A stretch of DNA of 36,627 nucleotides from Octopus bimaculoides (lineage: Eukaryota), in NCBI RefSeq assembly GCF_001194135.2, contig NC_069003.1:27391792-27428418 (forward strand). The letters run 5' to 3'. The notes beneath the pieces are model-generated. The model was not told where the DNA came from. It was given only the letters and a program-made list of their open reading frames with translations, and searched no databases. Shown here piece after piece: positions 2,735-35,275 of this stretch; within the stretch, counting starts at the first letter, position 1; each line of letters opens with the position of its first letter. The position numbers and the translations under genes are program-made.

Positions 2735-2971
2735 GTCAGAGCTACCTTCTTATTGATCCGTTATATACTGTCCAATGTTGTGGTCATATCTCAAGTTGGG
2801 AAATCTTCACTAAACGTGCTGGAACAGTCCGTATGCAAATATGGCGCCCCCAAAACAACAACAACAACAGCAGCAGCAACTACACTGATGTGGTGGACAA
2901 CAATAATTCAAAGGGCCAACAAAGCAATACCTATCAGTTAAGGGGTCAAAATAACCTTCTTGTTTCTCCAG
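2735..2971 (+). CDS. Exon 1 (first visible; phase 1-1): N-terminal non-cadherin module, part 1
   Basis: ttttcag acceptor and G|gtagga donor. Encodes [49 protein letters not shown]...[13 protein letters not shown]. Confidence 0.8.
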
Positions 2972-4158
2972 GTAGGAGAAAACACTGTCTTATCATTATT
3001 GTTATCGTTATTATTGCCGAGTCTGTTGTTGATATTATTGATCTTATCATCATCATCATCATCATCCTCATCGTCATCATCAGCATCCTCCTCATCATCA
3101 TCATCGTCATCATCAGCATAGTTATTTAAAGAAATTAATGGAAAATTAAACCTCAAATTCAGCCAATTTCTCCAGCCTGATGCCAGTCACAACAAAGATA
3201 TTTAAAAGCATAAACATTTAAAACAAACCTAAAAACTGCTGTCGATGTTATTTCCTTTAACCTGGTAACATTGATATTTGTGTCTGTGACAGCCAGATCT
3301 GTGTTTCTTATCATTGATATTATCTTAGCATTCTTGATAAGTTCTCTCATTAGTCCAAATGGAGATCTTCCCTTGATTTAACTGTTTTTTGTAATTATTT
3401 CCAATTTTAGATTAATAGTTCAAGGGTTCTATTTTTAGAAATCTTTATTCTTAATTCTCACTCATATTCACTTTCATTCATATTTTTGGTTGTGTTATTC
3501 TGGTAATTATTGTCATTATTTAATATATTTACTTATTTTCTACAGATAATATACAGAAAAAACTGGTTTTTCCTGTTACCCCGGCACAGTCTATTATGGT
3601 AAACACAGGAGATATGATTGGATGGTATGGTCTCTACAAGTTTCACATAACAAATTTCACTATAAGACTTTGGGTGTATGTATGTATGTGTGTATGTATG
3701 TATATATGTATGTATGTATGTATGAATGTATGTATGTATGTGTATAAATAGAGGGTGCATAAGATATTTGAAGACAGATTTATGTTTATAAAAAAATAGA
3801 TACCTAATAACAGATAATAACCTCTAGCTGTTTTGCAATGTCAGAAGCCTTCGAACAGGGTTCGTTTTCCACAATTCTCTTCAAACAGCAAAACTTCCTT
3901 TCCAGAGGCCCAAGTCGACCAGAACAAGAATCTGTTGATTCTTTTCCTTGGCTTTTGAATTGCATATTAACAGTAGCAAGAAGAATTTGAAGATTTTCGG
4001 TAATTTTTCGCTAGCCAAGACCAGCCTCAGATTGCCCAACAATAAAACCTCTTTGAAAATCTGACAGTTGTACTGAATCTTTTGTGCGTGGCATGGTTAC
4101 TCTTTGCAAATGTTTAATATAATGGCACCTGGAATAAAAAAGAATAATTACTGTATAC

Positions 4159-4200
<42 letters not shown>

Positions 4201-4425
4201 CAGACTTGTAAATATTTTGGGAGTATATGCCTTAACCTACTCTATAATAATAGTAATCATATTAAAACTATGGATTGCAGCTACTCCAGGAGTATGTGAG
4301 CATATTTCACAACCCTCTTGTGAGTTAAGCACATCATAGCATTTGCTTTACTTTATGTTTTGTATTCATAAATATCATAAACTGACTTGATACCAGTTGT
4401 GTGCCTGCCTATACATTTATTATAT

Positions 4426-4469
<44 letters not shown>

Positions 4470-5699
4470 GATAGGTAGATAGATATAAATATGCAAGAAT
4501 AATAATTTGCTTTATTAGGTCTTATTCAGGACGTGATATGATCACATACAATAAGAATGCTGCAACCAGAAGTACCATCTTGAGAACTTCGAAGATGCCA
4601 TCCCTGAAAATCGGAGACACATTTCAATTTCCTGTCAGAGTTATTGAAGATCGTAACTATGCTGTGAAAGCAGTTCTTTCATCTGGTAGGTATAGCAATA
4701 ACAGCAACAATAATAATGATGATGATGACTGATGATGATGGTTGATGGTGATTGATGATGATTGATGGTGATTGATGGTGATTGATGATGATTGATGGTG
4801 ATTGATGATGATTGATGGTGATTGATGATGATTGATGGTGATTGATGACAATGATTGATGGTGATTGATTGTGATTGATGATTGACGGTGATTGATGATT
4901 GATGGTGATTGATGATGGTGGTGATTGATGATTGATGGTTGATGGTTGTTGATGCTGATGATTGATGACGATGATGATTGTTGGTTGATGATTATGATGA
5001 TGATGATTGAGCTTACCAACCACATAGTTCCTGGTTCAGTCCCACTGCATGGCACTTTGGGCAAGTGTCTTCTACTGTAGCCTCGGGGTGACCAGAGCCT
5101 TGTGAGTGGACTGGGTAGACAGAAACTGAAAGCCCATCATATATATGTGTATACATACATACATATAGTGGATGTACTTAGTTGACTTTAGACGTTTCCA
5201 CTAATTAAATTGTGAAATAAAACATAACACTTTCTATCTTTGCCCACAGGTAAAGCACCAGTTTTTCGGAATCTACCTGCCGTGATATCTGTTCCAAGAA
5301 ATACTACTAAAGGGACATTGGTGTTTAGTATAAAAGCACATGATGATGACAGACAGGGCAAAATCTTCTTCCAGTTTATAGAATTTTCCAAGGAGAATAT
5401 TTCATTCCATCTGAATTCTGAAAGTGGTATATATTTATTCAAAGTTTTTCTGTTGTACGCACATACACATGCTTGCATGCGTGTGCAACACACACACACA
5501 CACATACACACACACACACACATACACACACACACACACACTTATATACGTATATACATACAAATACACATATATAGTCACATACATATATACACTGATA
5601 GATATGCATACACATATATATATATATATGTACATATGTGTACCTGAGTGTATGTGTGTGACTATGTGTATGACTATGTGTGCATGTATGTGTATGTGT

Positions 5700-5733
<34 letters not shown>

Positions 5734-5743
5734 NNNNNNNNNN

Positions 5744-5788
<45 letters not shown>

Positions 5789-7461
5789 GAGTGAGTGGAC
5801 AAATGAAAGAAGGGCACTCAACACATTAATTGGTAGTTGAAATTCAAAATGGCTGACGACTAGCATCATACTTGAAACTCAGAGTACCAACAAATTTGAA
5901 TAAAACTGTTTTGATCCATACATATATACAGGGTTGGCCTTCTGGAGTCAATTTAATTGATCTCTCTGCATCACAGATACAAATCAATATTGAGTTTTGT
6001 TTTCTTTTTTATATTTTAGGTGGGATATATTTGAATTCCAGTATTCCAGATATTGATTCCTTTAAACTGAAACTCCGAGTTTCTGATACTTGTGGCATGT
6101 ATTCTGACAGCATTTTAGACATTAGATTTAAACAAAAGAAACTGGGCAGTATATCGCCATTACAAGAGGTAAGTACATGTACTTGAGAGAGAGGTGAGGA
6201 GGAGAGTCTAAAAACAAGGAAGAAAGCAAAAGGGTGGGAAAAGTAAGGAATGAGAGAGCGGGGGAAGAAACAGAAAGAGAGGAACGTGTTGTGATAGTTG
6301 TAGACATCATAATAATTTTATAAACTTTTGAGAGAACATGAAACAATTTTGGGGTGGGATAGTAGGTCTCAAAATGCATAAAGCTATAAGTAATCTTTTT
6401 TGCTATAGGCACAAAGCCTGAAATTTTGGGAGAGGGAATAAATTGATTACATTGAACCAGTATGCAACTGGTACTTATTTTAGCAACTCCAAAAGGATGA
6501 AAGGCAAAGTCAACCTCAGTGGAATTTGAACTCAGAATGTAAAGACAGATGAAATGCCACGAAGCATTTTGCTGGATGTGCTTCTGATTCTGCCAGCTCA
6601 CTGCCTTAGCATAAATTTGTGAATAATGGTTTCAAATTCTGGCACAAGCCAGCACTTTTGGGGGAGGGGTAAGTCAATTACATCGACCCCAGTATACAAC
6701 TAGTACTTGTTTTATTGACCAAAAAAAAAATGAAAGGCAAAATCGATCTTGACAGAATTTGAACTCAGAACATGGACATATCAATTACTGAGAAGCATTT
6801 TCCCCGGCATGCTAACGATTCTGCCAGCTTGCTGCCTTAGAATAATGCTACAAATAATCTTTTCTACTATAGGCACAAAGTCTGAAATTTTGGGGGAGGA
6901 GGCTAGTCAATTACTTCAACCCCTGTATGCATTTGGTACTTATTTCATCGATCCCAAAAGGATGAAAGCAAGATTGATCTCAGCAAANNNNNNNNNNNNN
7001 NNNNNNNNNNNNNNNNNNNNNNNNNNNNNNNNNNNNNNNNNNNNNNNNNNNNNNNNNNNNNNNNNNNNNNNNNNNNNNNNNNNNNNNNNNNNNNNNNNNN
7101 NNNNNNNNNNNNNNNNNNNNNNNNNNNNNNNNNNNNNNNNNNNNNNNNNNNNNNNNNNNNNNNNNNNNNNNNNNNNNNNNNNNNNNNNNNNNNNNNNNNN
7201 NNNNNNNNNNNNNNNNNNNNATCTTTGCATGACTATTTGCAGCACTTCCAGTTTTACAATTTACCATTCCATATTGATGTGAGAGAGGACGCAAGCCAGC
7301 AGATGCTTCTGCGACAGTTCAACGTCAGTCATTCGGTGGCCGAAAGGAAAATATCCTGTTCTTTAATCAATGGAACTACGCAGAAGAATTTATTCCTTCT
7401 GAAACAAACCTTTCCATTCATAAGTGAGTAGAATTGTCCTACTTACGTACATATACATAAT

Positions 7462-7493
<32 letters not shown>

Positions 7494-10400
7494 TAATTAT
7501 AATGGTGTTTTTTTATAAACTTAAAGCTTATAGTGATCGCCGTGCAAATTGACTATGGAAAATAGTCTACTAATGGGGCATATAAGCCCTCAACAAAAAA
7601 GCAGGCTTTTCCATACATGTGGGACTTGAACCCACATCCCTTTTCCTTAGTCATTTGCACAGTGATTGCTATAAGCTTTAAGCTTATAAAAACAAATACC
7701 ATTATTATTATTTACAGAATTGTAAATCTCGACATCGCTTAACAAAACCATTCGCACCATGTGTATATGTGTGTGTGTGTTTAATAGTACTGTTTACCTT
7801 CAATCACTCCCAGTTTCTTTTTATTTACCATTGAAAAACAAAATATTGTTGAAACCAGTTTGGTATTTCAATAAATTTGTTACAAAATTTAAAAACTTCA
7901 TGTTTTAAGACTTAGGTGCATTTACAACCCCTGAAACTAACTCTCCTATATATATATATATATGTATAGGTTATGAGTGACAGTGATGTCAATTAGACCC
8001 AGAGGTTTCAAGTAATGCTGAGTAAGTGCTATGGATAGACCACGGTTAAGTTCCAGGTTCAGTGGTTATGCGAATAAGGAGTCGAACTTAGGTCATATAT
8101 CAGCGTGTGAATATAGGATATACTTTTCGTAATGAGATAAAAAAACCCAAGGCTGTGTATAATATAGAACATTTATAACATTTATATATATATATATGTA
8201 TGTGTGTATATTTCAGACACATATGAACTTTATTTGCGAGCCAAAGCCAAGTTATTGTATACAAAATTCACTTCACATGTAGCAGTTATAACCTGTTTTG
8301 ATGGTCACCAAAAGATTCAGTCGTCCCTTACAATGGATCTGATCAAGAACAAAGCTCCAGTTGTACATAATTTACCTGGTAAGTACCAAAACCATTCTCT
8401 AGAGTTTCAATATCATTTCGGATGATTTATTTTTTGGTCTTGCAATGTCTAATGTTTCTGGAACGGTGTTGTAAACGATGAGCGACTTAATTGATCATTG
8501 AAGCGAAAAAGAAATAAAAAGGAAAAAAGAAAATGGATGAATTTGCAAATATATTGTGGAATTATTAGACAGACAAATGAACGGACAATGGAAGAAGTAA
8601 TTCTTCAAATAAATGGAAAATCGAGTTTCTCAAGAATTATTCTATGCTGACGCCCACAATATATGTATGGATGCTTGTGTATGTGTGTTTGTGTGTGTAC
8701 ATACATGTATGTGGGTGTGGGTGTGTGCACATACATGCATATGTGTGTGCATAAGTATGTATGTATTATGTATATATGTATAATTATATATACATATATA
8801 CATATTCGCCATGATTGACTGCTAACTCCACAAGTTTTTTTTTTATTCCCTCTCTGTTTATTTCTTCATGTTCCTTTCTGTTGAAGGATGAAGACAGACA
8901 GACAGACACACACATTATATATTATATCTTATTTTATATTAGATTATATGTATATATATATATCTAGAGAGAGGGTGAGAGAGAAAAGGAGGGACAAAGA
9001 AAGCAGAGTAAGGGTAAAAGAGGAAATTCTGTAATAAGAGTGTGTGCATATTTAGCCCAAAAAGGCTGAGAAGCCATGCAACCTTGAGAAAAGCGAATTT
9101 GATTTTCGAAATCTGTATCCTAAGAATAATGTTGTCCATAAAATAATAATTATAAAATAAAATTTACTATGACAAATATATCGACTTTTATTTCAACAAC
9201 TCTCCTACCCTCTATCTACCATCATGAATCTGTCTCTATTATTTATCACACTCTTTATCACCTGCTCTCTATGTAGAGGGTCTTGCTGACAAATTTAGAC
9301 AATTTTTATGATGTATAAAACTGGTTATAAATATTAAAATAATGGTAGTAGACAGATAAAATTTTAATGTAACATTTATTACAACAAAAACATTTATCAC
9401 TCAGTATGGTTGCCCTTTTAGGCGATTACTGCTGCTACATGAGAACGAAATTTTTATGCAACGGCCACAACCGCTGCCTTTTTGATTTTGTGTGTTGCAT
9501 GCACAATGCAGGTCTTCATACTGTTGACACTCTAGTGTGGTGAAGCATTGGTCCTTGCTTGAAGTACACTCCATAAAAAGTAATCAAGGAGGTTGGGATC
9601 TGGGTTATTACTGGGCTAGATGTTGGCCCTCACAAAACATGGCACCTTCTCACCAAGGAAGGCCTGTGTTGCTTTTGAACCCTGGCATGGTGCAGAATCC
9701 ACATTGTTGTCAAGCCGAAACTTCTGCTCCATCTAAGGTCACAGAGAGTTCTTCAGGCTGTCCAGATACTCCTTTGTACCAAATTCAATGAAGTATGGAT
9801 CCATGGCACTTCCATCACTTGCCATGGCTCCAAATACCATCACAGAGGCAGGATTCTTAGTCTCAAACACAGGAGGGATATCAGAAGGGTTGTATGCAAT
9901 CATTCAAGAATTTCTGTGATTTACCTCAGTGTCCACAATGATCTTTTTCTCGTCCACAAACACGAGAGTTTTTCCTGCACCTCAATACTTGATGAATAAC
10001 AGAAGCTTGGGCATCTCTCAGCTCTGATTGCTTTGGCCTTGGCTGTTAGGAGGTGACGGCTTTGTCGAACATAGCTGGTCATGCCAAGGTTCCTGTTCAC
10101 AGCTCTGGGCACTATGGAAAGAGACACATTGCGTTTCTTTGTAAGAATTATGAATATCCAACTAATTTTGTTTTTGTTTGTCAAAGCTACTTACAAATTT
10201 TCCTTTAATCACTCAATTTCTTCCTCTGTTTCCATCACAATGAACATCTCTTCAATATGTTACATGAAAATTGTGTGTTTGTGTTATGGTAAATTCGTAT
10301 TTCTTTCTTGCTATGAATCTGATATTATATGTGTTTAACATTCATGTATTTGGCAACCAATTCACCATTCATAAAACTTTACCAAAAAATTTTCCACTCG

Positions 10401-13400
10401 TTGGCTATGCATAGATTTCTATTTTTATCTGTAGCCAATTCTAGGTAAACTAGTTTAGCATCAGAGACGAGACTTTGCTTTATTTAGAGAATTGGGATTT
10501 GGAAAGAATTTCTTGTCGAATGCATTCTTTGATTCCCAAATTCTTTATTTTATTTATTCATTTATTCCATTTTTTTACATTTCTGTAGAATTTGTCTTTC
10601 TTTTGCTTTATTTGTTGTTTTTGGTTTCAATCACATTTCGGATTTAGATCTCTTTTTTCCATTTCCTTTCTCTCAATATCGGTTTAACCCTACAACTGCG
10701 AAATTAAATTTCTTAGTTATTCCAGTAATGATGTTATATATCTACCAAGAAATAGAAATGGTATTTTCTGCAAGTCCTGTTGCCACCATAAACTTAAAAT
10801 ATCTTTTATCTTTTACTTGTTCCTGTCACTAGACCATGGCTATACTGAGGCACCACCTTGAAGAATTCTTAGTTGAATGAAGTGGCCCCAGTCACTAGCG
10901 TAGCTAGTAGGGTGCAGTAAGGTCGGTCCGCCCCAGGCAGCACTTTTAAAGGGGCACCACTTTTGAGTCTGCTGTAGGTAATATGTGTCTTTTGTGGGGT
11001 CTGGGGATGGCAAACATAAAGGCCATCCCGGGTGGCACACATTCTAACTATGCTAGTGGCACCAATACTTATTTTTTTCTTTTTAAGCCTTGTACTTATT
11101 TTATCAGCCTCTTTACTGAGCCACTAAGTTACAAGGATACAAACAAACCAACACACACTCACACACACATTAATAGAAGACGGGTTACTTTCATTTTCTA
11201 TCTGCCAAATCCACTCACAAGAATTTGGTTGGCCCCTGGCTATAGTAGAAGACACTTGCCCAAGGTGCCATGCTGTGGGTCTGAACCAGGAACCATGTGA
11301 TTAGGAAGCAAGGAAGCAAGCTACTTACCACACACCCATGCCTGTGCCTACATCTTAACAAAAATTAATGTCAAACATGACATTACTCAACAAGAGATAA
11401 TATATCTTTTCCAGCATCAATATCCATTTCTGCGAAAGATACCAAAATAGGAAGTCAAATATATTTTGTGAATGCAACTGACGAGGAGGGAGATTCTTTA
11501 ATAATTTCAATGTCCTGTCCAAAGAAACACTGCCCTTTCCAGATGTCAACATGTAAGTAAAATATTTGGGTAACTCATAATTTCTAAAAGAATGCAACTG
11601 GAATTAACCCTTTAGCATTTAAGCTAGCCCAAATATTCTATCTGTTTATGTTTAAAACTGGCCAGATCTGGCCTCTCACACCTACCCTATAATATCATTC
11701 TAAAAGTAAATTATCACATCATCAAAATCTTGGAGATATGAGATAGTGCATGATTAATTCAAAGCCTTTAACAGGATAATCTTAATGCTAAAGGGTTAAA
11801 CTGGCCAAATATCTGGCCCAAATAACATTCTACCTGTTTTATGCTTAAACTGACCAGATCTGGCCACTCACACTTATGCTATACTATTATTCTAAAAATA
11901 AACATTCACATAATTTAAATCTCAAAGTTGAGAGGTAATACATAATGAATTCAAAACAATGCAAATAAGTAAGCAATACATTTGACAGAATAATATGTAC
12001 GCTACAAGGTTAACGTGTCATTCATTACAGGCTGAAGTCTGATTTCTGGAATTGAATAAATGTGGGTTTTTTTTGCATTTTGTGAGTTTTGTCTGTCATA
12101 TTAAGAAGAGGGATTTGGTATTTGGAGGCAATTTCAAGAGCGTAGGGAATCATATATGTATCTGTGTGTGTGTGTGTGTGTATTTATATATATATATATA
12201 TATATACAATTATGTGTATTTCTTCTATCTTAATGAATAAAAATTCTTCGGATAGAATAAATGGGTTAATAGAAACCAATGTAGCAAAGAACACAAAATA
12301 ACTGTGGTTTAGTTCCTGTTTTTAAGGCAGGAACTCCTTGAAATTTTGGGTATTTGAGTATATTTAAAAAATTAAGGAATGGAGAAAACGCATGTTATNN
12401 NNNNNNNNNNNNNNNNNNNNNNNNNNNNNNNNNNNNNNNNNNNNNNNNNNNNNNNNNNNNNNNNNNNNNNNNNNNNNNNNNNNNNNNNNNNNNNNNNNNN
12501 NNNNNNNNNNNNNNNNNNNNNNNNNNNNNNNNNNNNNNNNNNNNNNNNNNNNNNNNNNNNNNNNNNNNNNNNNNNNNNNNNNNNNNNNNNNNNNNNNNNN
12601 NNNNNNNNNNNNNNNNNNNNNNNNNNNNNNNNNNNNNNNNNNNNNNNNNNNNNNNNNNNNNNNNNNNNNNNNNNNNNNNNNNNNNNNNNNNNNNNNNNNN
12701 NNNNNNNNNNNNNNNNNNNNNNNNNNNNNNNNNNNNNNNNNNNNNNNNNNNNNNNNNNNNNNNNNNNNNNNNNNNNNNNNNNNNNNNNNNNNNNNNNNNN
12801 NNNNNNNNNNNNNNNNNNNNNNNNNNNATACATTTTTTTTCACAAAAATAAAAATAAACTTTAGGGGTGCATAAATTACATGAGTAGATCATTTGCAGAA
12901 TTTTTTTGAAATTTTTTTTGCTGAAAAAAGAGGTACAAAACATAAACATTTGTACCAGAAGCTGACTCATTTAATGTCAGAATAGGTTTTTACAGAAAAA
13001 ATAAGGGCTTAAATATAATGAAGTTGACTTTTATTTATGCTGGATGGTATAATGCTAATATTTTCTGTAAAAATTTACTAAAACCATTAAACGGTCAACT
13101 ACTTTCTGAAGTCTGGTGGTCATGCTTCTCATCACGGTCCAGGCCATATTTTACGTATTTTACTCGATTGAATAAAGTGTCATCCAAGCTGATGTTTATT
13201 GGTAATTAAACTTAATTTGTAACACCTGCACATATTTATCAGCCTTATGAATATATATATGATTCTTTACACTTATGAATAACTTTATAGCTGGGACAAT
13301 GTCATCAGTTCGTGCCCTACTAGCAGAAACTTCACCAATATTTGATCTTAAGATGTTCATATCAGATCATTATAACCAAGAAGGACCATTCATTTTAACC

Positions 13401-13992
13401 GTACTTCTTACAGGTAAGAATACATTCCATTACACCTTATTATGAACCTATATAACCCTTTAGTATTTAGACTTGCCATATTCAGCCCTAAATCTTATAT
13501 CTGCTTTATTTTCAAACTGGCTACAACTGGCCTCTCACTCCTACCCTACAGTGTCATTTCAAAAATACATTCTCACATTATTGAAACCTTGAAGCTACAA
13601 GATAATGCAGGATTAATTGAAAATGATGTAAATAAATGAATATTACATTTGAAAAAATAATCTGAATGCTAAAGGGTTAAACTTATTTTGTTGTGTATCA
13701 TTCATAAAAATAATTGATAAAGCAGCATGGCAAATGATTTTATTTTGCTCCAGGACTCAGTCATTGGATTGTGGCCATGCTGGTGCACCCATCATCAGGT
13801 TTTTAAATTGGATTATATTGTAATGTAATCTATGGAAAACGTTTCCAAACATAATATCTCTGGATCTATATCATCCAGCATACCATTTCTTCTTAAGACT
13901 GGTCCTCAACTATCTTTTACTTATGGACCTCTTTGACTCCTATTTTATCCAAGTGGACCCTCATAGCCATTCAATGCTTAAAAAATCCTTTT

Positions 13993-14039
<47 letters not shown>

Positions 14040-14688
14040 TTAACGTCCGCTTTCCATGCTAGCATGGGTTGGACGATTTAACTGAGGACTGGCGAACCAG
14101 ATGGCTGCACCAGGCTCCAATCTGATTTGGCAGAGTTTCTACAGCTGGATGCTCTTCCTAATGCCAACCACTCTGAGAGTGTAGAGGGTGCTTTTACATG
14201 CCACCGGCACAAGGGCCAGTCAGGTGGTACTGGCAACGGCCACGCTCAAGTGATGTTTTTTACATGCCACCTGCACAGGAGCCAGTCCAGTGACATTGGC
14301 AACGACCTCGCTCAAATGTTTTTTCACGTGCCACCGGTTGAGAACCACTGCTATAGAGTTTTCACCATGAACCCTGTTTTATATTTACCATTTATCATTA
14401 TGACTTTTCTTGTGTCCTTAGACCTGAACAATCCACCAACAATATCACCAAATGAAGCTAATCTATATGTGAAAGAGAACACAGCTAATACGGAAATGAT
14501 CTTCCAACTCCAAGGTTCAGATTTTGATGATGACCAGTTAACCTATCACTGGAGATTTCAGTCTGAGTCAGGATCCATGTATTTTAGCTTAAGTAAATGT
14601 AAGTAGAAACCAATGAATAATGCAGCGGAGATAGTTTTCATTCAAGCTTCTGCTGCAAACTCTGCTTAAGTGTAAAATTATTATTATG

Positions 14689-14739
<51 letters not shown>

Positions 14740-15097
14740 TTCAGTTGGCAGAATCGTTAGCATGCTGGACAAAATGCGGTTAAGCATTTTGTCCACCTTC
14801 ACATTCTGAGTTCAAATTCAGCTGAGGTCACCTTTGTCATTCATCCTTTTGAGGTCAATCAATAAAATAAGTAGCAGTTAAACTCTAGGGTCAATTTAAT
14901 CGACTTGTCCTCTCCCACAAAATTATTGATCTTGCATCAAAATTCTAGAAGCACTGTGTGTCCCACCCATACTTAACAAGAAAATATCTCACACATTCTA
15001 CCACAAACCAAAATACATCTTTTCTCTTCCTCACATTTCCACTTTATGCACTTTGCTTACCTTCCACTCTCCAATTCTGTCCTCTTCTTCCTGTGTC

Positions 15098-15134
<37 letters not shown>

Positions 15135-16550
15135 NNNNNNNNNNNNNNNNNNNNNNNNNNNNNNNNNNNNNNNNNNNNNNNNNNNNTAGAAAACCTTCAT
15201 TAATTGCATGGCCATATTTATCTTAAATTTCTGAAATAAAAAAGGAAAATACAAAACTCAAATACAAAAGGGCGTTACTTCTGCCACACCCTACACACAC
15301 ACAATTCTATCTGAATAATGCTAAATCGCTGAGTGATAGATTTACTTTAATTTATAAGAGAACATTAAACACAACTCCAAAGTGTGTTGCATCGTGTGTG
15401 TGTGTGTGTGTGTGTGTGTGTATTTATTTTTGTATTAAAATTATAAATATATTTCCTTTCCCTCTTTTATTTGTAGCTGGAGAAATAACAGTGATTTCTA
15501 AGCTGGATTTCGAGAGTATGTCATCTCGTAATTTCAATGCTACAGCTTGGGCCAATGATGGTATATCAGAATCGAACCCAGTAAAGCTTTGTATCAAAGT
15601 GGTCGACATTAACGAACCACCCCAGTTCTCCTCAGCTAACTATTCACTTTCTGTATATGAGAATTCGGTAAGATTATTTTGGCTGGTCCTTCTTCTAAAG
15701 TTTTTGTTTTTAAATTAGGTCCAAATTGTTGAGATTGAAAAATAAAAGTGGACATCATTTGATAGGGTGTTCATGTCCTGACGTATCACAAGTTTATGTC
15801 TTATAACAAGAATACTGCATTAGTATTTTGGGTTTTAATATAATATCCACATTAAGGTGGCAAACTGGCAGAATCATTTGCATGCCGTGTGAAATGCTTA
15901 ACGGAATTTCATCTGCCGTTACATTCTGAGTTCAAATTCCACCAAGGTTGACTTTGCCTTTCATCCTTTCTGGGTCGATTAAATAAGTACCAGTTACGCA
16001 CTGGGGGTCGATGTAAGCAACTTAATCCCTTTGTCTGTCCTTGTTTGTCCCCTCTGTCTATAAGAAATGTATAATAGTATAAATAACTGTGGGGTCACTC
16101 ACCAAGCAGATAGTGTAGATGTGGGGGGTCAAGTCGTTTGACCTTTGACAGACACAAGAAGAAAGTCTAAAGGACATACAGATTTTGCATCTAGGCAGGA
16201 AGGCAGAAAGGGCATTGTGAGAGGGGTTATAAATCACTACAGTGCAAAGGGTTTGCATTCACATATACATCCGTGTATACATACATATTTACACAGACAC
16301 AATGATGGAGTTGGTGGAAGTGATGGGGTTGCTATTCATTTTTATGAATTAACGTTCCTACATATTTCACTTTGTGGATGTGCATGGCTTAGTGGTTAGA
16401 GTTCTGGGCTCATGGTTGTAATATAGTTTCGATCCCTGGACTGGGCGATGCATTGTGTTCTTGAGCAAAACACTTCATTTCACATTGCTCCAGTTTACTC
16501 AGATGGTAAAAATGAGTAATCCTGTGATGAACTGGCATGCCATCCAGGAG

Positions 16551-16591
<41 letters not shown>

Positions 16592-17853
16592 AAACTGGGA
16601 AATTGGCCCTGTGCATCTTATGGAATAATGTGAACTAACCATTTTTCTCTTTACTTCTCTATTTCAGGCTGGAGTTGTTGTAATCCCAAATACAATGTTT
16701 CAAGTCTATGATCCAGATCAGTTAGACAAAATAACTTTCAAAATTTCGGGAGGACAACATGCTTTAAACTTCAAAATTGACCCTGATTCTGGAGAGGTCA
16801 GATTCGCTGTGAACTATGATGTCCGAATCATGCCATCACATGTCTTATTGAACATCACTGCTATAGACAAGTCTGGTTTAAACTGCACTGCTCAAGTGGA
16901 CCTAAACATCAAACCTTTGAACTGGAAACCTTATCTTAACAATTTACCATGGAAACAGACAGTTCCTGAGAACAGTAACTTCAGTGGACGTCCACTCTAT
17001 ATTGTCACTTCTTTCGATGCTGACAAAATGGACCCGGTTTATTTCCGGGCATCGTTTTACCCTTTGACTGGTGCAAGTAAATTCTATCTGAATTATTCCA
17101 GTAAGAGTTATTCTTAATATTATCATAAAACTTTTCATTTGTGGTTGTTGTTGCTGTTGTTGTTTGGCCTTGTAGGGGTATCCTGATCGAGCAGGCCTAT
17201 GATCTTAAAGCATTCTAGAAATGATCATTCTGTTATATTTTCATACTATATCCACTGTGCCCTCCATACACATACACACCGTTAATTAAGACAAGAGTAT
17301 GACCTGTGTGAGATTTGGCTGGAGATCGAGTGACCCTGAGGCCTTCATTCATTTAACAGGCTTCATTGTATGCATAACATTATATATTCCACTTCCAGTT
17401 AGTTTTTCTTGTCTATCTCAGTTTTACTTCAAATATGACACAAATACTAGTTGAACACTAAGAGTCAATGTAATTCACTTAACTACTCTTGGCTATGAGT
17501 ATAAAATCTGCATTTCTCTCCTAAGCCATGTCATGCCAGTGTGGTGTAGGTTCATCAAACCAATATGATCTCAAGTTCAAATTCATGGCTTTCACATCAG
17601 ACCATGGTTGGTGGAGAGGACATGCTGAGGCCTTTATCTTGTAGCGGACTGAACATTGACAATCCAATTCAAAATTGAAATTCTAATAGATGCTTTTCTC
17701 TATCAACAGCTACTGACTGATGTGGGTGGTTTATTCCATGTTTCAACATGTTACCAAAAGTCATGGGTGCTGTTTTGATTTTTGATTTAGTAAGCATGTC
17801 CGTGAGTGCTTGACACATGGAATTCAAGGAAAGATGTCCAAGGTGATGGTGAC

Positions 17854-17885
<32 letters not shown>

Positions 17886-17909
17886 CACCGACAATGCTGA
17901 TGACAATGA

Positions 17910-17940
<31 letters not shown>

Positions 17941-20461: not shown

Positions 20462-20505
<44 letters not shown>

Positions 20506-21426: not shown

Positions 21427-24400
21427 AAGGTGGTGAGATGGTTGAATCATTAGTGCATCAGACAAAATACTAAATGGCATTTCTTCTGGTTTTACATTCT
21501 GAGTTCAAATCCTGCACGGGTTGGCTTTGAATTTCATCTCTTTTGGGGGTGGGATAGGTGGGGGGTGTCAATGCAATAAATACAATATGAGCCCCGGGGT
21601 TAATATAATTGTCTAGATACCCCTCACCCAAAACTTCAGGTGTTGTGCTTATAGTAGAAAAAAATTATTGTTGTTGTAACTGTTTTTTTGCCCCAGGTCA
21701 CGTTCTATTTCTGTCTTTTAGGAAAGAACAGTGTTTACAAACATCATTCCTCTGAATACAATAGAACCTGATCAAGGAGATGTCACTCAGTACAAAATTA
21801 GCAAAGGTTCAAATCACAGTCTGTTTGCAATTAATAGCACAACAGGTGAACTGTACTTTGCCGTCAACTACAGTACTACCACAATGCCAAAGTTTACCTC
21901 AATCAATGTCACAGCATACGATTCGTCAGGATTGAGCAGCACAGCCAGGCTCGATATTGACATCAAGGCTAAGAACCGGATTCCAAAGATAATCAACTTA
22001 CCACAGACTGTCTATGTTAAAGAAGAAGCAAAACCAGGCACAGAACTGTTTCAGGTAGATGTCTATGATGCCGACAAGGATTCTGTGTCATTCAACTTCA
22101 TCTATTTCCCACCTCAAGGAGCTGTGTGGTTTACATTCGATGATAAAAGTAAGTAGGTTCTTTTAATTGTGTTATAATTATTGGTGAAAGCACATGGCTC
22201 AGTGGTTAGAGCGTCAGGCTCACAATCATGAGGTAGTGAGTTCAATTCCTGGACTAGGCTGTGTTATGTTCTTGAGCAAGACACTTTATTTCACGTTGCT
22301 CCAGTTCACTTAGCTGTTGTGATGTCACTGATGCCAAGCTGTATTGGCCATTGCCTTTCCTGTCAAGCTAGCATGGAAAATGGACATTAAATGAAATGAT
22401 GATATACTTACATATAGGTATATAATGTATGTATAGAGTGTTTACTCTTCATATTACAGGTGGAAAACTATTTACAGCAGCTGACCAAATGCTTAACTAC
22501 GAAGCTATGTCTGATGTTAGCTTTATATTTTCTGTATCTGTGAGTGATGGCAAATCCCATTCAGATTTCTCCAACCTTACCTTGCAAATTGTTGATGTAA
22601 ACGAAGCTCCACACTTCTATTCTCGCCTTTATTTTGTTGATGTTGTTGAAAGCAAGGTGAGTAGAACATCTCCTTGCATGCCACCATCTCTTTTCAATGT
22701 AGTTAGGATGAGTTCAACAGTTGTGTTCGAAATTAAATAAAACTCAATGGATTAATATCTTTTATCTGTTATCTTCTGCTTGTTTCAATCATTTGACTGT
22801 GGCCACCGACCGAAAACCCCTCGAAATCACTGTTCCTTTACATTCCAAATTACAAACAGTCAAATCAATTCAAATCACATCAAATCAAACAATCAAAATA
22901 GCATAATTTAATAATCAATGAATAGGCACTTAAGCCTCTTATACTTCCTCCCCGAGCAACTCTTTTGCTGCCTGCAGGCAAGCCTGCTGCGACAAGCAAA
23001 CTTCTTACCACTCAGCCCTACCTGAAGTTACGTATGCTTGTTTAAGAACATTAAATGATTATTTTGTGTTTGAAATGTTGATGACAAGTGATTCTGATAA
23101 ATCAAGCCTGTGCATTTCATATTGTATATTTAACAGGGTGGAACTGTGTTGCCGATGTATGTCCAATTTAAAGTAATTGATCCTGATATCAATGACACTT
23201 ACCACTTCAGTATGATGAGTTCAGATAACAGCAGCTGGTTTTCCATAGATCCAATCACTGGAAATATTAGTTTTGCTATTGATTATAATGTCAGGTAATG
23301 CAATGTTCAATAACTATTATAGTGTTCTATATTTCTCTGCATGGACTAGAATTTGTGTGTGTGAGTATATACATATATATGTGTACATGTGCATGTATAT
23401 ATGTATGGTCATATGTATATATGTAGTGAAAATGTGTGGCTTAGTTGTTAGGGTGTTCAGCTCACAGTCGTATGGTCATAAGTTCAATTCCAAGTGATGT
23501 GGCGAGTCCTTGAGCAAGACACTTTATTTCATGTTGCTCCTGTCCAATCAGCTGGCAAAAATGACTTGCACTTGTATTTCACGAGGGCCAGTCTGGCAGT
23601 ACTGGCAATGGCCATGCTGAAATGGTGTTTTTTACGTACCACCTGCACAGGAGTCAGTCCAGTGGCACTGGCAACAACCTCGCTCGACTGTTTTGTTCAC
23701 ATGCCATTGGCACAAGTTCCAGTAAGGCGACGCTGGTAACGGTCATGCTTAAAAGGTACTTTTTATGTGCCACTGGCACGGAAACCAGACAGCTGCTCTG
23801 GCAGTGATCCCACTCAGATGGAGCTGTTAGCACTCCACTTGCATGAGTGCCAGTCATGGAATTTGGTTCAATTTCGATATATATATATTAAAGATTAATA
23901 GATAAGATGGAGTATAAAAAAATTATTTATTAGAAAAACAGTTGTTCCAGTTCATGTTGCAAAACTCCCTTTCGAGACAGTACTTCTTGATACACCAAAC
24001 ATTTCGGTTGTTTTCGTTATGTTAGCGCCTGCCATACGAGCACCAACAATTTGTCCTCTTTGAAAGTCAGACAGATCTGTCATTTTAATGAATTCTAATT
24101 ACCTTTTTCTCATTATGCCTGAAAAGAAACAGCAATTTTAGTAAAACATATTAAGCAACACTATCAATAAATCAAAAAACATAAAAATAAACAAGCTTTT
24201 GACGGTTTTATAGATATTTCAAAATTATGATGCTATGATGCTAAGTGTTTCCATTATTTTGTCCAACCCCTGCATATATACATGTGTGTGTATGATTTTT
24301 TTTAATTATAGACTCCACCCTTCAAATATATTTCTGGTTGTTGCTGTGAAAGACAGGCATAATCTGCAGGACACCACTTTGGTCAATGTTACAGTACATT

Positions 24401-34984: not shown

Positions 34985-35275
34985 GTGCAATCGATATAAA
35001 TCAAAACTGAATTTATTAAAAAACATGCTCATTGTAACGTTTCTGTTCCAGTAGGTAGTGACCAGAGCGGTGATGAGAGCTCGTCTGTCGAGGCACCAGC
35101 TCAGCCACCCCGTCGTCAGTACACTGATAACACCGAAAGGGATATTATCACACCTCTTGATTCTGAGGGGAAACGCCCGTCACGAAAGGATATCCACAAA
35201 GACAGCCGGATGGTAACTCCTTCTTATAGATCCTTAAAGAGGGAGAACATTATCAATGCTTGGTTGAACTGCTGA
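2735..35275 (+). CDS. Multi-exon cadherin-superfamily type I membrane protein (5'-incomplete; 26 exons; about 2038 aa; N-terminal unknown module + about 16 EC-like repeats + TM + about 160 aa tail)
   Basis: 26 segments, each bounded by AG/GT, join with compatible phases into one open frame (6119 nt = 2 + 2039 codons including stop). Repeated cadherin motifs (PE/KEN, DxD, LD[YF]E, SDG/DKG, DxNE.P, DVNDNAP) and a hydrophobic TM stretch are present. No start codon or signal-peptide exon was found. Confidence 0.9.
3546..3624 (+). CDS. Exon 2 (phase 1-2): N-terminal module, part 2
   Basis: ttttctacag acceptor and TG|gtatgg donor. Encodes [27 protein letters not shown], in phase with exons 1 and 3. 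Confidence 0.78.
3751..4150 (-). mobile_element. Tc1-like transposon relic (N-terminal HTH region)
   Basis: ATG at 4094 on the minus strand begins [30 protein letters not shown]..., a typical Tc1 paired-like HTH start. It is interrupted by a stop. Confidence 0.72.
4519..4685 (+). CDS. Exon 3 (phase 2-1): N-terminal module, part 3
   Basis: tttattag acceptor and G|gtaggt donor. Encodes [13 protein letters not shown]...[19 protein letters not shown]. Confidence 0.8.
4703..5008. repeat. (GAT)-derived minisatellite with 10/20-bp periodicity (GATTGATGGT GATTGATGAT)
   Basis: Directly visible. Source of the His/Ile-rich spurious ORFs. Confidence 0.92.
5250..5426 (+). CDS. Exon 4 (phase 1-1): first half of EC1
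   Basis: cccacag acceptor and G|gtatat donor. Encodes [17 protein letters not shown]...IKAHDDD...FHLNSES. Confidence 0.87.
6020..6168 (+). CDS. Exon 5 (phase 1-0): second half of EC1
   Basis: attttag acceptor and GAG|gtaagt donor. Encodes [26 protein letters not shown]...PLQE. Confidence 0.87.
6405..6987 (-). mobile_element. Three tandem copies of a SINE-like repeat (family D)
   Basis: Reverse complements of GGCAGTGAGCTGGCAGAATC...TTCTGAGTTCAAATTCC...GACTTTGCCTTTCATCC at about 6405-6607, 6612-6838 and 6852-6987. Other copies on + at about 14745, 15858, 21428, 28270, 32900 and 34505. Confidence 0.75.
7243..7423 (+). CDS. Exon 6 (phase 0-1): first half of degenerate EC2
   Basis: atttgcag acceptor and A|gtgagt donor. 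Encodes [18 protein letters not shown]...TFPFI. Confidence 0.82.
7494..7710. mobile_element. MITE-like element with about 60-bp TIRs and an internal tRNA T-arm-like hairpin
   Basis: 7494-7553 is the reverse complement of 7650-7710. Interior 7618-7636 reads GTGGG-TTCAAGT-CCCAC on the minus strand. Confidence 0.6.
8217..8378 (+). CDS. Exon 7 (phase 1-1): second half of EC2 and start of EC3
   Basis: atttcag acceptor and G|gtaagt donor. Encodes [10 protein letters not shown]...VITCFDG...[12 protein letters not shown]. Confidence 0.85.
9380..10330 (-). mobile_element. Tc1/mariner DD37D-type transposase pseudogene
   Basis: Minus-strand translation VFVDEKK...NHRN...[14 protein letters not shown]...DSAP...[13 protein letters not shown], with 37 residues between the second and third Asp. 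Multiple stops and frameshifts. Ends approximate. Confidence 0.85.
10893..11058. mobile_element. hAT-type MITE nested in a SINE
   Basis: 15-bp TIRs CACTAGCGTAGCTAG / CTAACTATGCTAGTG. 8-bp flanks GCCCCAGT and GCACCAAT (6/8 identical), consistent with a hAT target-site duplication. Confidence 0.7.
11415..11552 (+). CDS. Exon 8 (phase 1-1): EC3 part
   Basis: ttttccag acceptor and T|gtaagt donor. Encodes [46 protein letters not shown]. Not in the ORF track; found by hand. Confidence 0.85.
11604..12013. mobile_element. piggyBac-type MITE (11604-11799) plus an abutting partial second copy (to 12013)
   Basis: TTAA|CCCTTTAGCATT ... AATGCTAAAGGG|TTAA termini. The second copy shares the internal sequence and ends AGG|TTAA. 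Confidence 0.78.
13291..13413 (+). CDS. Exon 9 (phase 1-1): EC3 second half
   Basis: ctttatag acceptor and G|gtaaga donor. Encodes [41 protein letters not shown]. Confidence 0.83.
13452..13680. mobile_element. piggyBac-type MITE, same family
   Basis: ATAA|CCCTTTAGTATT ... AATGCTAAAGGG|TTAA, colinear with 11604-11799. Confidence 0.78.
13992..14340 (-). mobile_element. Retroposon-like repeat (family E) ending in a (GAT)n tail
   Basis: Reverse complement of 32080-32420. A partial copy lies at 23585-23850. Contains internal duplicated GCCAGT..GGCAACGAC units. Orientation inferred from the tail. Confidence 0.72.
14422..14598 (+). CDS. Exon 10 (phase 1-1): EC4 first half
   Basis: tccttag acceptor and T|gtaagt donor (alternative in-phase donor 6 nt upstream). 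Encodes [10 protein letters not shown]...YVKENT...GSDFDDD...YFSLSK. Confidence 0.88.
15477..15667 (+). CDS. Exon 11 (phase 1-0): EC4 second half
   Basis: tttgtag acceptor and TCG|gtaaga donor. Encodes [13 protein letters not shown]...NDG...DINEPPQF...YENS. Confidence 0.92.
16378..16552 (+). mobile_element. tRNA-headed SINE with CORE-like segment (family B)
   Basis: TGGCTTAGTGGTTAGAG...TTCGATCCC head followed by GTGTTCTTGAGCAAAACACTT, resembling the CORE/MIR TGTGACCTTGGGCAAG motif. Copies at 22183-22402 and 23426-23581. Confidence 0.7.
16668..17100 (+). CDS. Exon 12 (phase 0-1): module 1 long exon (EC5 + first half EC6)
   Basis: atttcag acceptor and A|gtaaga donor; 433 nt. Encodes YDPDQLD...FAVNYD...DKSG...KPLNWKP...PEN...DADKMD. 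Confidence 0.93.
17991..18297. repeat. Head-to-head inverted pair of an unclassified interspersed repeat
   Basis: 18060-18164 is a near-perfect reverse complement of 18193-18297. Further copies at 18707-18838 and 25748-25903. Confidence 0.9.
18414..18607 (+). CDS. Exon 13 (phase 1-0): module 1 short exon
   Basis: gctacag acceptor and AAG|gtatgt donor. Encodes TGAVSL...LDFE...NDG...DVNEAPVF. Confidence 0.93.
19898..20327 (+). CDS. Exon 14 (phase 0-1): module 2 long exon
   Basis: tcctcag acceptor and A|gtaagt donor; 430 nt. Encodes SDPDLND...LDYN...DRGG...RSLNKAP...DPDSED. Confidence 0.93.
20823..21013 (+). CDS. Exon 15 (phase 1-0): module 2 short exon
   Basis: ttgttaag acceptor and AAG|gtattt donor. 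Encodes [13 protein letters not shown]...SDG...DSNEPPYF. Confidence 0.92.
21060..21368 (-). mobile_element. RLE-type LINE endonuclease fragment interrupted by a microsatellite
   Basis: Minus strand encodes [47 protein letters not shown] (decayed PD-(D/E)xK region). Abuts (TTA)n at 21369-21425. Confidence 0.75.
21722..22148 (+). CDS. Exon 16 (phase 0-1): module 3 long exon
   Basis: cttttag acceptor and A|gtaagt donor; 427 nt. Encodes EPDQGD...FAVNYS...DSSG...KAKNRIP...DADKD. Confidence 0.93.
22183..22402 (+). mobile_element. tRNA-headed SINE (family B)
   Basis: Same head and core as 16378-16552. Confidence 0.7.
22460..22656 (+). CDS. Exon 17 (phase 1-0): module 3 short exon
   Basis: attacag acceptor and AAG|gtgagt donor. 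Encodes SGKLF...LNYE...SDG...DVNEAPHF. Confidence 0.93.
23137..23294 (+). CDS. Exon 18 (phase 0-2): module 4 long exon, 5' piece
   Basis: taacag acceptor and AG|gtaatg donor. Encodes [20 protein letters not shown]...[16 protein letters not shown]. Read-through hits TAA immediately. Confidence 0.9.
23426..23581 (+). mobile_element. tRNA-headed SINE (family B)
   Basis: Same head and core as 16378 and 22183. Confidence 0.65.
23890..24272 (-). mobile_element. Tc1-like deletion derivative with one intact TIR
   Basis: Reverse complement starts CAGGGGTTGGACAAAATAATGGAAACAC (Tc1-type TIR) and encodes [38 protein letters not shown]. The left boundary is approximate. Confidence 0.8.
24312..24583 (+). 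CDS. Exon 19 (phase 2-1): module 4 long exon, 3' piece
   Basis: attatag acceptor and A|gtaagt donor. Encodes [17 protein letters not shown]...HSINNVP...PEN...DNDPWD. Exons 18+19 total 430 nt. Confidence 0.9.
25944..26140 (+). CDS. Exon 20 (phase 1-0): module 4 short exon
   Basis: gttttag acceptor and TCG|gtgagt donor. Encodes SGFLYL...LDYE...SDG...DVNEAPEF. Confidence 0.93.
26181..26610 (+). mobile_element. SINE-like repeat (family C) with internal (TG)n tract
   Basis: GGCATGGCTGTGTGGTTAAGAAGC...GGTTCAGTCCCAC...GGCACCTTGGG. Related copies at 5010-5138 (+), 10800-11348 (-), 20425-20750 (+, 3' part), 26900-27078 (-) and 33045-33356 (-). Confidence 0.72.
27164..27593 (+). CDS. Exon 21 (phase 0-1): module 5 long exon
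   Basis: atttccag acceptor and A|gtaagt donor; 430 nt. Encodes FDQDADD...FAVNYD...DTKG...SHLNRIP...PEN...DPDPND. Confidence 0.93.
28473..28663 (+). CDS. Exon 22 (phase 1-0): module 5 short exon
   Basis: ccaccag acceptor and TCT|gtaagt donor. Encodes SGAVTL...LNYE...YDG...NINEAPYF. Confidence 0.92.
28849..28920 (-). pseudogene. tRNA-Thr(UGU)-like pseudogene flanked by about 21-bp inverted repeats
   Basis: Minus strand folds as a cloverleaf: D-stem GTTT/AAAC, anticodon stem CTTGA/TCA(C)AG with loop CATGTAA, T-arm GTGAG-TTCGAGT-CTCAT. Position 33 is A instead of U, and there are bulges in the anticodon and acceptor stems. Confidence 0.55.
29276..30105 (+). CDS. Exon 23 (phase 0-2): EC15, EC16, stalk, TM helix and juxtamembrane tail
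   Basis: In-frame AG at 29274-75. Encodes QDPDRND...VDYD...DKGG...DVNDNAP...DFD...DKG, then [25 protein letters not shown] followed by basic [10 protein letters not shown]. Donor AG|gtaaat; read-through gives stop TAA at 30107-09. Confidence 0.92.
30110..30910. repeat. Compound (GA)n/(GT)n microsatellite field with an internal duplication
   Basis: The segment TAGGAAGGTTAGCA.TATATATCTGGAA occurs at about 30250 and again at about 30400 among GA/GT tracts. Confidence 0.88.
31193..31572 (+). mobile_element. tRNA-derived SINE (family A)
   Basis: Colinear with 212-560 along its full length, with two short segments absent from that copy. Confidence 0.85.
32080..32420 (+). mobile_element. Retroposon-like repeat (family E) with (GAT)n tail
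   Basis: ...GGTTGGCGTTAGGAAGGGCATC...GGAAAGCGGACGTTAAACGATGATGATGAT, matching 13992-14340 in reverse complement. Confidence 0.72.
32728..32832 (+). CDS. Exon 24 (phase 2-2, 105 nt): cytoplasmic tail
   Basis: ttttatag acceptor and AA|gtaagt donor. Open frame [34 protein letters not shown] in an otherwise very AT-rich intron. Confidence 0.68.
32900..33040 (+). mobile_element. SINE-like repeat (family D)
   Basis: GAGCTGGCAGAATCGTTAGCATGCC...TTCTGAGTTTAAATTCCACCGAGGTCGACTTTGC, shared with about nine other loci in the window. Confidence 0.7.
33045..33356 (-). mobile_element. SINE-like repeat (family C)
   Basis: Reverse complement of the 26181-type element (CTATAGTAGAAGACACTTGCCCAAGGTGCC...GAACCCAGAACCATGTGG). 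Confidence 0.72.
33612..34503. repeat. Microsatellite fields (TAG)n, (CT)n, (TA/CATA/TATC)n, (TAT)n flanking exon 25
   Basis: Directly visible. Exon 25 (33769-33827) lies within this span. Confidence 0.9.
33769..33827 (+). CDS. Exon 25 (phase 2-1): cytoplasmic tail
   Basis: tatttcag acceptor and G|gtgaaa donor. Encodes [20 protein letters not shown] and bridges the phases of exons 24 and 26. Confidence 0.58.
35052..35275 (+). CDS. Exon 26 (probable last coding exon)
   Basis: ccag/tag tandem acceptor. GC-richer open frame [23 protein letters not shown]...[11 protein letters not shown] ending TGA, followed by TAA. AATAAA at 35498-35503. Confidence 0.66.

Follow-up and report, generated by a model that had tools for sequence, protein, structure and literature searches.

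A window of 36,627 nt from Octopus bimaculoides (RefSeq assembly GCF_001194135.2, contig NC_069003.1, positions 27,391,792–27,428,418 of the forward strand) contains a multi-exon gene coding for a long cadherin, in which an N-terminal non-cadherin domain, referred to here as the tip, precedes a stalk of extracellular cadherin (EC) repeats. The window is AT-rich and includes stop-free plus-strand stretches with cadherin motifs, in which Pfam Cadherin domains were confirmed. To define the exon junctions, every frame-compatible GT/AG pair was scored against two homologues: P0001, a 1908-amino-acid (aa) protein named 'cadherin-23-like' from Octopus sinensis, and P0002, a 2054-aa protein from a Logan assembly, both recovered with a provisional concatenation of the stop-free stretches as query. 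P0002 is encoded on a 6359-nt contig of RNA-seq run SRR27666065 by one uninterrupted open reading frame (ORF, 50–6214) that covers a signal peptide, the N-terminal tip module, an array of 16 ECs, a transmembrane helix and a tail. The resulting model comprises 26 plus-strand exons (positions 2735 to 35275), each bounded by an AG acceptor and a GT donor, which join into a single open frame of 2038 codons with a TGA-class stop at 35273–35275 (Table 1). In global alignments the model showed 93.6% identity to P0001 and 49.6% identity to the transcript-derived P0002. The original prediction, made from the sequence of the window, had claimed a spliced ORF of about 2038 aa, and the homologue-guided splicing returned the same length and the same coordinates.

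The gene is real and intact, and the model lacks its 5'-most exons. Exon 1 contains neither a Met nor a signal peptide and, since it begins at a phase 2 acceptor with two bases that complete a codon, the ORF is 5'-incomplete and requires an upstream exon. A search of window positions 1–2734 with residues 1–66 of P0002 revealed no credible signal-peptide or N-terminal exon. The window corresponds, with 100% identity, to positions 5464–42090 of locus L002 (O. bimaculoides GCA_001194135.2, chromosome CM046623.1), and in this longer locus we found an upstream exon of 96 nt (exon 0, L002 1362–1457), located approximately 4.0–4.1 kb before the window start and beyond an assembly gap. Exon 0 is flanked by a TTTTCAG acceptor and a GTAAGC donor, ends in the phase needed by exon 1 and encodes GILCASGSSQKYHFVGEETPSNYSERVDNTS(R), which aligns to residues 29–60 of P0002, including the conserved N-terminal cysteine, and belongs to the N-terminal segment of the tip domain. 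Given that exon 0 itself opens at an acceptor, the signal-peptide exon, and thus at least one more 5' exon, must lie further upstream.

The 1927-aa RefSeq protein XP_014775730.2, annotated as 'protocadherin Fat 2 isoform X1', agrees exactly with our model over residues 112–2038; its start is the first Met in frame within exon 3 (L002 10001), and it has no signal peptide. The O. sinensis RefSeq model begins 19 residues further in than that of O. bimaculoides. Both models (that of O. sinensis as judged by alignment) lack the signal peptide together with two thirds of the tip and, because both starts lie inside one confidently predicted beta-sandwich, they are truncated annotations. The automatic names, 'protocadherin Fat 2' in O. 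bimaculoides and 'cadherin-23-like' in O. sinensis, are misleading. RefSeq isoforms X1 and X2 differ by one Val at a NAGNAG tandem acceptor (35052 versus 35055), while in isoform X3 (1543 aa) splicing goes to the acceptor at 29274 and not to the one 2 nt further on at 29276 (AAG/AG/), which shifts the frame so that the protein ends before EC15, the transmembrane helix and the tail. For isoform X3, secretion, nonsense-mediated decay of its transcript or a prediction artefact are all conceivable.

From the outside in, the encoded protein is composed of a tip of approximately 160–175 residues, three degenerate cysteine-bearing ECs, 13 recognisable ECs, a transmembrane helix and a charged cytoplasmic tail of 161 aa. 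Pfam identified 13 Cadherin stretches in the 2038-aa model (E = 2.4e-94) and nothing in residues 1–162 or in the tail, and no EGF, LamG, Cadherin_C (E up to 1), Cadherin_tail or Cadherin_2 domain was detected in the whole protein (PF08266, PF08374 and PF15974 absent). Manual segmentation divided aa 163–1825 into 16 contiguous EC-like repeats of 99–110 aa each, which align mutually; the XEX, DxD, LD[FY]E and DxNExP motifs are present across EC4–EC15, and the ectodomain carries 42 N-glycosylation sequons. EC1–3 are too degenerate for Pfam and have lost the Ca2+ motifs. An AlphaFold2 (AF2) model of the orthologous tip and EC1–3 of P0002 (predicted local distance difference test, pLDDT, of 83) contained three seven-stranded domains and matched crystal structures of multi-EC cadherins with E of about 1e-16, including fragments of CDH23 and PCDH15 as well as the Fat4-Dchs1 entry 8egx; by this model, EC1–3 are predicted to adopt the cadherin fold. 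A juxtamembrane segment of 31 aa separates the EC array from the transmembrane helix. Two tail motifs are kept between the octopus protein and P0002, namely [HR]-[FY]-[ED]-F-W-N and a C-terminal I-[IL]-N-A-W-L-N, and some bivalve members of the family described below have FWN-like motifs in their tails as well. Thus, the order originally proposed, an unfamiliar module followed by about 16 ECs and a transmembrane helix, was borne out by Pfam, manual segmentation and AF2. The accompanying description of the tail as charged and disordered stood as far as charge is concerned (37% charged residues) and was revised with respect to disorder, as the FEFWN and NAWLN motif structure is conserved, six more residues than 'disordered' implies.

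The tip is 60% identical between the octopus protein and P0002 and contains the motifs CCG..W, QVWRP, GDxIGW and YA[IV][RK]A. When a two-sequence tip profile (octopus and P0002) was compared with 1.84 billion representative proteins, 177 matches at E of 1e-3 or better were obtained, and alignments of the family tips showed invariant C, G, W, W-R, D and G columns. AF2 run on a 32-sequence tip alignment predicted an all-beta domain (pLDDT 86.4, predicted template-modelling score, pTM, 0.83). Foldseek comparison of the tip with the PDB returned weak jelly-roll matches only (best E 2e-3, template-modelling (TM-)score 0.48 or less), among them the lectin-like domain of Cwp84, CBM6, a mycobacteriophage central fibre and a cyanophage capsid protein; some further weak matches to bacterial toxin or protease entries, with TM-scores below 0.4, were irrelevant. 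Neither Pfam, searched with the tip alone and with 32 family members, nor a family-profile search of the PDB sequences gave a match to the tip. The CC pair is present in cadherin-linked tips and absent from the tip repeats of the hemichordate Glandiceps, and the sequences suggest that this pair, the exon-0 cysteine and the lone EC1 cysteine may form architecture-specific disulfides. Tips without cadherins were also found: Glandiceps has them in tandem copies, a nemertean protein and echinoderm proteins contain them, and in a protein of the gastropod Babylonia the tip is accompanied by astacin, ApeC, CUB, kringle, sushi and C-type lectin domains. An environmental contig of apparently animal origin (ERZ25070167, L003) carries, in the region 1118–6160, a tip-like domain between two F5/8 type C (discoidin) fragments, an arrangement that suggests another mosaic extracellular protein using the tip module. 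Separately, a word-index profile search returned mostly short ENA fragments that look like single animal-gene exons and not like a prokaryotic family, and a low-complexity poly-Asn/Ser loop insertion of approximately 20 aa (window 2851–2928) is octopod-only, being found in Argonauta too but neither in P0002 nor in the bivalve homologues.

The order of tip, degenerate EC1–3, EC stalk of variable length and type I transmembrane helix was found in bivalves, cephalopods and an annelid. Proteins of 857–1074 aa with an N-terminal tip followed by Cadherin domains and a transmembrane helix are present in Crassostrea, Saccostrea, Mytilus, Mercenaria, Argopecten, Mizuhopecten and Potamilus, and further members were identified in Solemya (3565 aa), Argonauta and the annelid Capitella. 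The bivalve proteins are colinear with aa 1–680 of the octopus model (BLASTP, 27–29% identity, E down to 1e-76), and the Solemya protein aligns over aa 1–1751. In the family alignment, C254, C318 and C363 are invariant, as are the F/P columns; the conserved cysteines of EC1–3 comprise the EC1 D-x-C-G cysteine, the EC2 Cys pair and the EC3 C-x5-CPF loop. The octopus protein displays all of the family features: a tip directly before EC1, cysteine-bearing degenerate EC1–3, a stalk of alternating EC pairs and a type I transmembrane helix. The bivalve 'protocadherin Fat 4-like' proteins of approximately 900–1000 aa (for example XP_022309583.1 of Crassostrea virginica, XP_053376790.1 of Mercenaria, XP_021343494.1 of Mizuhopecten and KAK3611262.1 of Potamilus) and KAL5014827.1 of Solemya velum share with it the tip, the EC1–3 cysteines, the alternating stalk and the transmembrane helix, but differ in stalk length (most bivalves have about 6 ECs, cephalopods 16 and Solemya about 30) and in their tails, which are mostly unrelated to the octopus tail apart from the FWN-like motif in some. 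Bivalves have several paralogues, whereas one cluster was seen in octopods. Family members carry automatic names such as 'Fat 4-like', 'Fat 3-like' and 'cadherin-23-like', and every named one is uncharacterised. In line with the original prediction of a poorly described mollusc-type cadherin family, a tip with degenerate EC1–3 heads cadherins of oysters, mussels, scallops, clams, Solemya and Argonauta, and of an annelid as well. An octopus skin-mucus protein listed as 'cadherin 23' or 'cadherin-23-like' (A0A6P7UBR3) was considered and set aside as the product of a different gene; neither the accession nor the peptide belongs here.

Within the stalk, exons 12–22 form five tandem two-exon units, in the fourth of which the first exon is split into 158 and 272 nt (Table 1). 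Each unit is 624–627 nt long, phase-symmetric and codes for two ECs (EC5 to EC14), and the odd- and even-numbered ECs fall into two sequence classes. For each of the 16 ECs the best match is the EC at the same position of P0002, and the duplications therefore predate the split of the two lineages. The linkers alternate between two types. Even-to-odd linkers read D-[VIS]-N-E-[AP]-P with L-[DN]-[FY]-E and, by motif reading, appear to retain most Ca2+ ligands, whereas odd-to-even linkers read x-[LKI]-N-x-x-P with N-Y-D/S or D-Y-N, and N-Y-D/N stands where D-R-E would be; by the same reading, these linkers lack the acidic ligands at Ca2+ sites 1 and 2 and retain the DxD and D-x-G ligands of the EC that follows. 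The full canonical linker, DVNDNAP, was found between EC15 and EC16 only. The same alternation is seen in P0002 and, at a regular period of 208 aa, in the 3565-aa Solemya protein. The repeat patterns indicate that this EC-pair unit expanded recently in Solemya, separately from the expansion in cephalopods. Stalk length has grown by EC-pair duplication independently in different lineages. Ca2+-poor linkers are known in PCDH15, DN-cadherin and Fat/Dachsous, and by analogy with these we infer that the octopus stalk may be periodically hinged. Residues from about 580 to 2300 of the Solemya velum sequence P0026 contain the near-identical repeats VTDVNESPVFA / IENVNQKPALL / ITDTNESPVFS / IENVNKKPTLL.

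Table 1. Exons and other features of the tip-domain cadherin gene (window positions).
Feature	Position	Strand	Content
Exon 1	2735-2971	+	aa 1-78; first strands of the tip beta-sandwich; CCG, W and QIWRP motifs
Exon 2	3546-3624	+	aa 79-105; tip domain, VNTGDMIGW motif
Exon 3	4519-4685	+	aa 105-160; C-terminal tip strands; RefSeq coding sequence starts at internal ATG at 4538
Exons 4 (5250-5426) and 5 (6020-6168)	5250-6168	+	EC1, degenerate; conserved D-x-C-G cysteine
Exons 6 (7243-7423) and 7 (8217-8378)	7243-8378	+	EC2, degenerate; conserved Cys pair
Exons 8 (11415-11552) and 9 (13291-13413)	11415-13413	+	EC3, degenerate; conserved C-x5-CPF loop
Exons 10 (14422-14598) and 11 (15477-15667)	14422-15667	+	EC4 and start of EC5; first canonical-type linker (DINEPP)
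Exons 12 (16668-17100, 433 nt) and 13 (18414-18607, 194 nt)	16668-18607	+	EC-pair unit 1 (EC5/EC6)
Exons 14 (19898-20327, 430 nt) and 15 (20823-21013, 191 nt)	19898-21013	+	EC-pair unit 2 (EC7/EC8)
Exons 16 (21722-22148, 427 nt) and 17 (22460-22656, 197 nt)	21722-22656	+	EC-pair unit 3 (EC9/EC10)
Exons 18 (23137-23294, 158 nt), 19 (24312-24583, 272 nt) and 20 (25944-26140, 197 nt)	23137-26140	+	EC-pair unit 4 (EC11/EC12); extra intron splits the 430-nt exon
Exons 21 (27164-27593, 430 nt) and 22 (28473-28663, 191 nt)	27164-28663	+	EC-pair unit 5 (EC13/EC14)
Exon 23	29276-30105	+	EC15, DVNDNAP linker, EC16, juxtamembrane segment, transmembrane helix, tail start
Transmembrane helix	29945-30007	+	aa 1857-1877, 21 residues
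Exon 24	32728-32832	+	cytoplasmic tail
Exon 25	33769-33827	+	cytoplasmic tail; conserved HFEFWNN motif
Exon 26	35052-35275	+	tail end; conserved C-terminal IINAWLNC and stop; NAGNAG alternative acceptor at 35055
N runs inside the gene	5734-5743, 6988-7220, 12399-12827, 15135-15186, 19390-19811, 25613-25747, 26679-26688, 27731-28025, 34876-34928		intronic

The window contains 10 N runs, all of them intronic or upstream of exon 1. The nine within 2735–35275 are all intronic, the nearest ending 22 nt before exon 6. In the global alignments to P0001 and P0002 no homologue-only insertion was found at the gap-flanking junctions, and as neither homologue shows extra residues at the junctions that span gaps, no coding exon is hidden in them. 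The newer chromosome-level assembly has the same N runs as the window and, carrying identical gaps, is not independent evidence on this point; N gaps also flank the window at both ends. TG, TA, CAT and ATT microsatellites crowd the introns and border most of the assembly gaps. A dispersed repeat of approximately 83 nt with a tRNA-like 'GAGTTCAAATTCC' box is present in several introns (14772–14854, 15892–15974, 21465–21547, 32934–33016 and 34542–34624), the copies being probably tRNA-derived short interspersed elements; Rfam gave one tRNA match, on the minus strand at 28849–28920 (36 bits). Intron 12 holds a near-perfect 111-nt hairpin (18059–18169 / 18188–18298, 96% complementary, 18-nt loop), and a 228-nt inverted pair with 92% complementarity (14020–14247 / 32193–32420) is located 18 kb apart in introns 9 and 23; both are probably remnants of transposable elements. 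Two minus-strand ORFs in the 3-kb intron 7 (9739–9903 and 9921–10184) looked transposase-like by eye and were dropped, as Pfam gave nothing.

Taken together, the gene encodes a type I membrane cadherin that bears the tip on an EC stalk and that is a candidate heterophilic receptor. More tentatively, we propose a heterophilic recognition or adhesion receptor, in which a lectin/CBM-like tip would be held rigid on EC1–3, perhaps via disulfides of the family-specific CC pair and the lone EC1 cysteine, and, some 70 nm away from the membrane, would bind a ligand that is a glycan or a protein. The stalk would act as a Ca2+-stiffened, periodically hinged spacer with a length tuned in evolution via EC-pair duplication, and the FEFWN and C-terminal NAWLN motifs would recruit cytoplasmic partners. 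The jelly-roll/lectin-like fold of the tip and its occurrence in non-cadherin extracellular mosaics bear on the originally proposed ligand-binding tip on an EC spacer and are suggestive only. More speculative still is the broader proposal that the tip represents a domain family of lophotrochozoans and ambulacrarians that has so far gone unrecognised, that would bind ligands, possibly glycans, and that would define a new class of heterophilic receptors with a reach set by EC-pair duplication. Several points weigh against a tip-bearing receptor. The tip fold matches are weak, and 'lectin-like' denotes a predicted fold class and not a demonstrated activity; the Ca2+ occupancy of the LNxxP linkers is a motif-based reading; the signal-peptide exon was not located; and literature searches by accession, SRA run and topic found no description of a tip-domain cadherin family. 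Moreover, the RefSeq proteins of two octopus species open inside exon 3 (Met 112 in O. bimaculoides) and omit the tip exons, and many long cadherins, such as Fat-Dachsous and protocadherins, bind by EC-EC contacts, as the octopus stalk could too. The RefSeq starts would agree with exons 1–3 coming from a different transcript and the 2038-aa ORF being a chimera of manual splicing, a possibility raised with the original prediction that almost certainly does not hold: exon 3 codes for the last tip strands and also holds the RefSeq start, the frame is open for 111 codons upstream of Met 112, these codons span two phase-compatible GT-AG introns, and the RefSeq start falls mid-way in a single confidently predicted beta-sandwich. 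In addition, the tip precedes the ECs in the same order on the P0002 contig, in the Argonauta model, which starts at the exon-1 residue and runs on into the ECs, and in at least 14 bivalve proteins, so that a separate transcript for exons 1–3, checked against these three sources, is very unlikely.

The possibility that the stalk itself binds, by antiparallel EC-EC overlap of either a homophilic or a heterophilic kind as in protocadherins or Fat-Dachsous, while the tip merely caps it and serves cis-clustering, protection or regulation, is unlikely overall, though the least unlikely of the rivals. EC4–EC16 are well conserved by position between the octopus protein and P0002, with an identity of 45–69% in EC5–16 and 31–47% in EC1–4, most long cadherins with solved complexes bind via EC1–4 surfaces, and the AF2 model of the P0002 tip and EC1–3 matches EC-EC-binding structures such as 8egx; however, the tip with EC1–3 is the most conserved hallmark of the family, the stalk varies from approximately 6 to more than 30 ECs, which is hard to square with a register-dependent overlap, and EC1–3, the usual binding repeats, have lost their Ca2+ motifs. 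It is improbable that the product is mainly a shed or secreted structural protein of extracellular matrix, mucus or shell type and not a signalling receptor. Isoform X3 ends before the transmembrane helix, secreted mosaics that have astacin, CUB, C-type lectin or F5/8C domains also contain the tip, and the ectodomain carries 42 N-glycosylation sequons, but octopus and P0002 share the transmembrane helix and the two tail motifs, which are seen again in bivalve members, the skin-mucus 'cadherin-23-like' protein stems from a different gene, and isoform X3 is possibly a prediction artefact or a target of nonsense-mediated decay. Finally, the RefSeq names 'protocadherin Fat 2' and 'cadherin-23-like' and the best matches outside the family (Dachsous/PCDH16-like and Fat4-like) would make the gene a diverged orthologue of Fat, Fat-like, Dachsous or CDH23, all known giant cadherins, which is highly improbable: identity to these matches is only 23–25%, the octopus protein has 16 ECs and not 27 or 34, no EGF/LamG and no shared tail, the N-terminal domain is absent from all named Fat/Dachsous-like matches inspected, and bivalve family members match better, with E down to 1e-76 over the tip and EC1–5.

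Cephalopod cadherin work has so far centred on the expanded protocadherins. The gene described here belongs to a separate, mollusc-wide cadherin lineage, whose defining tip is missing from Pfam, from solved structures and from the RefSeq models of O. bimaculoides and O. sinensis. The tip domain, the family it defines and the corrected gene model are new, while the gene was already in RefSeq and long Ca2+-poor stalks were already known. If the tip does bind, it would represent a third cadherin mode of partner engagement, beside strand swap and EC-EC overlap. The family also provides a natural stalk-length series for studying ectodomain reach and Ca2+-poor hinge linkers in adhesion. Furthermore, a systematic annotation error (wrong start codon and misleading names) is flagged, and a corrected 26-exon model with one upstream exon is supplied.

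Pfam, the 16 mutually aligning repeats and the Ca2+-binding linker motifs place the protein in the cadherin superfamily, and comparison with its classes agreed with the original view that no named class fits: 16 ECs are spread over about 20 exons, EGF, LamG, Cadherin_C, Cadherin_tail and Cadherin_2 are absent, and the best matches outside cephalopods (Dachsous/PCDH16-like and Fat4-like) show only 23–25% identity. Classical cadherins have a catenin-binding tail and, in vertebrates, a free EC1 for strand swap or, in invertebrates, membrane-proximal EGF/LamG domains. The octopus protein differs from classical cadherins of types I–IV in having no Cadherin_C, no EGF/Laminin_G and a domain of approximately 160 aa before EC1. 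As EC1 is capped by the tip domain, strand swap through a free EC1 N-terminus is structurally excluded, and the suggestion that this is not a strand-swap adhesion molecule was supported. Clustered and delta protocadherins contain 6–7 ECs largely in one exon, a Cadherin_2 N-terminal domain and a protocadherin tail, whereas the octopus gene distributes its 16 ECs over exons 4–23 and lacks PF08266, PF08374 and PF15974.

CDH23 and PCDH15 bind heterophilically, tip to tip, via EC1–2 and not by strand swap, and their non-canonical Ca2+-poor linkers give local flexibility. They resemble the octopus protein in their long EC stalk, single transmembrane helix, Ca2+-poor linkers and multi-exon genes, but have no non-cadherin N-terminal domain, contain 27 and 11 ECs, respectively, plus a membrane-adjacent MAD domain, and carry other tails; cadherin-23 is further set apart by the 16 ECs, tip-capped EC1 and 31-aa juxtamembrane segment of the octopus protein, and no specific sequence relationship to CDH23 or PCDH15 was found. 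In Fat and Dachsous, Ca2+-free linkers bend the ectodomain, binding is heterophilic and there is no catenin-binding tail. These proteins likewise have many ECs and include the best sequence matches outside the family, but they possess 27–34 ECs, with EGF and LamG in Fat, and no tip; the octopus protein, with 16 ECs and no EGF/LamG, is distinguished from Fat, Fat-like and Dachsous cadherins by counts, Pfam and identity, its best non-cephalopod matches (Dachsous/PCDH16-like and Fat4-like) reaching only 23–25% identity over the EC repeats. Hedgling, a cadherin of sponges and cnidarians that is to our knowledge absent from bilaterians, combines an N-terminal Hedge domain (the hedgehog N-terminal signalling domain) and VWA with EGF and Ig domains and, with no homology implied, is like the octopus protein in concept, in that a non-cadherin module is placed N-terminal to a membrane-anchored EC array.

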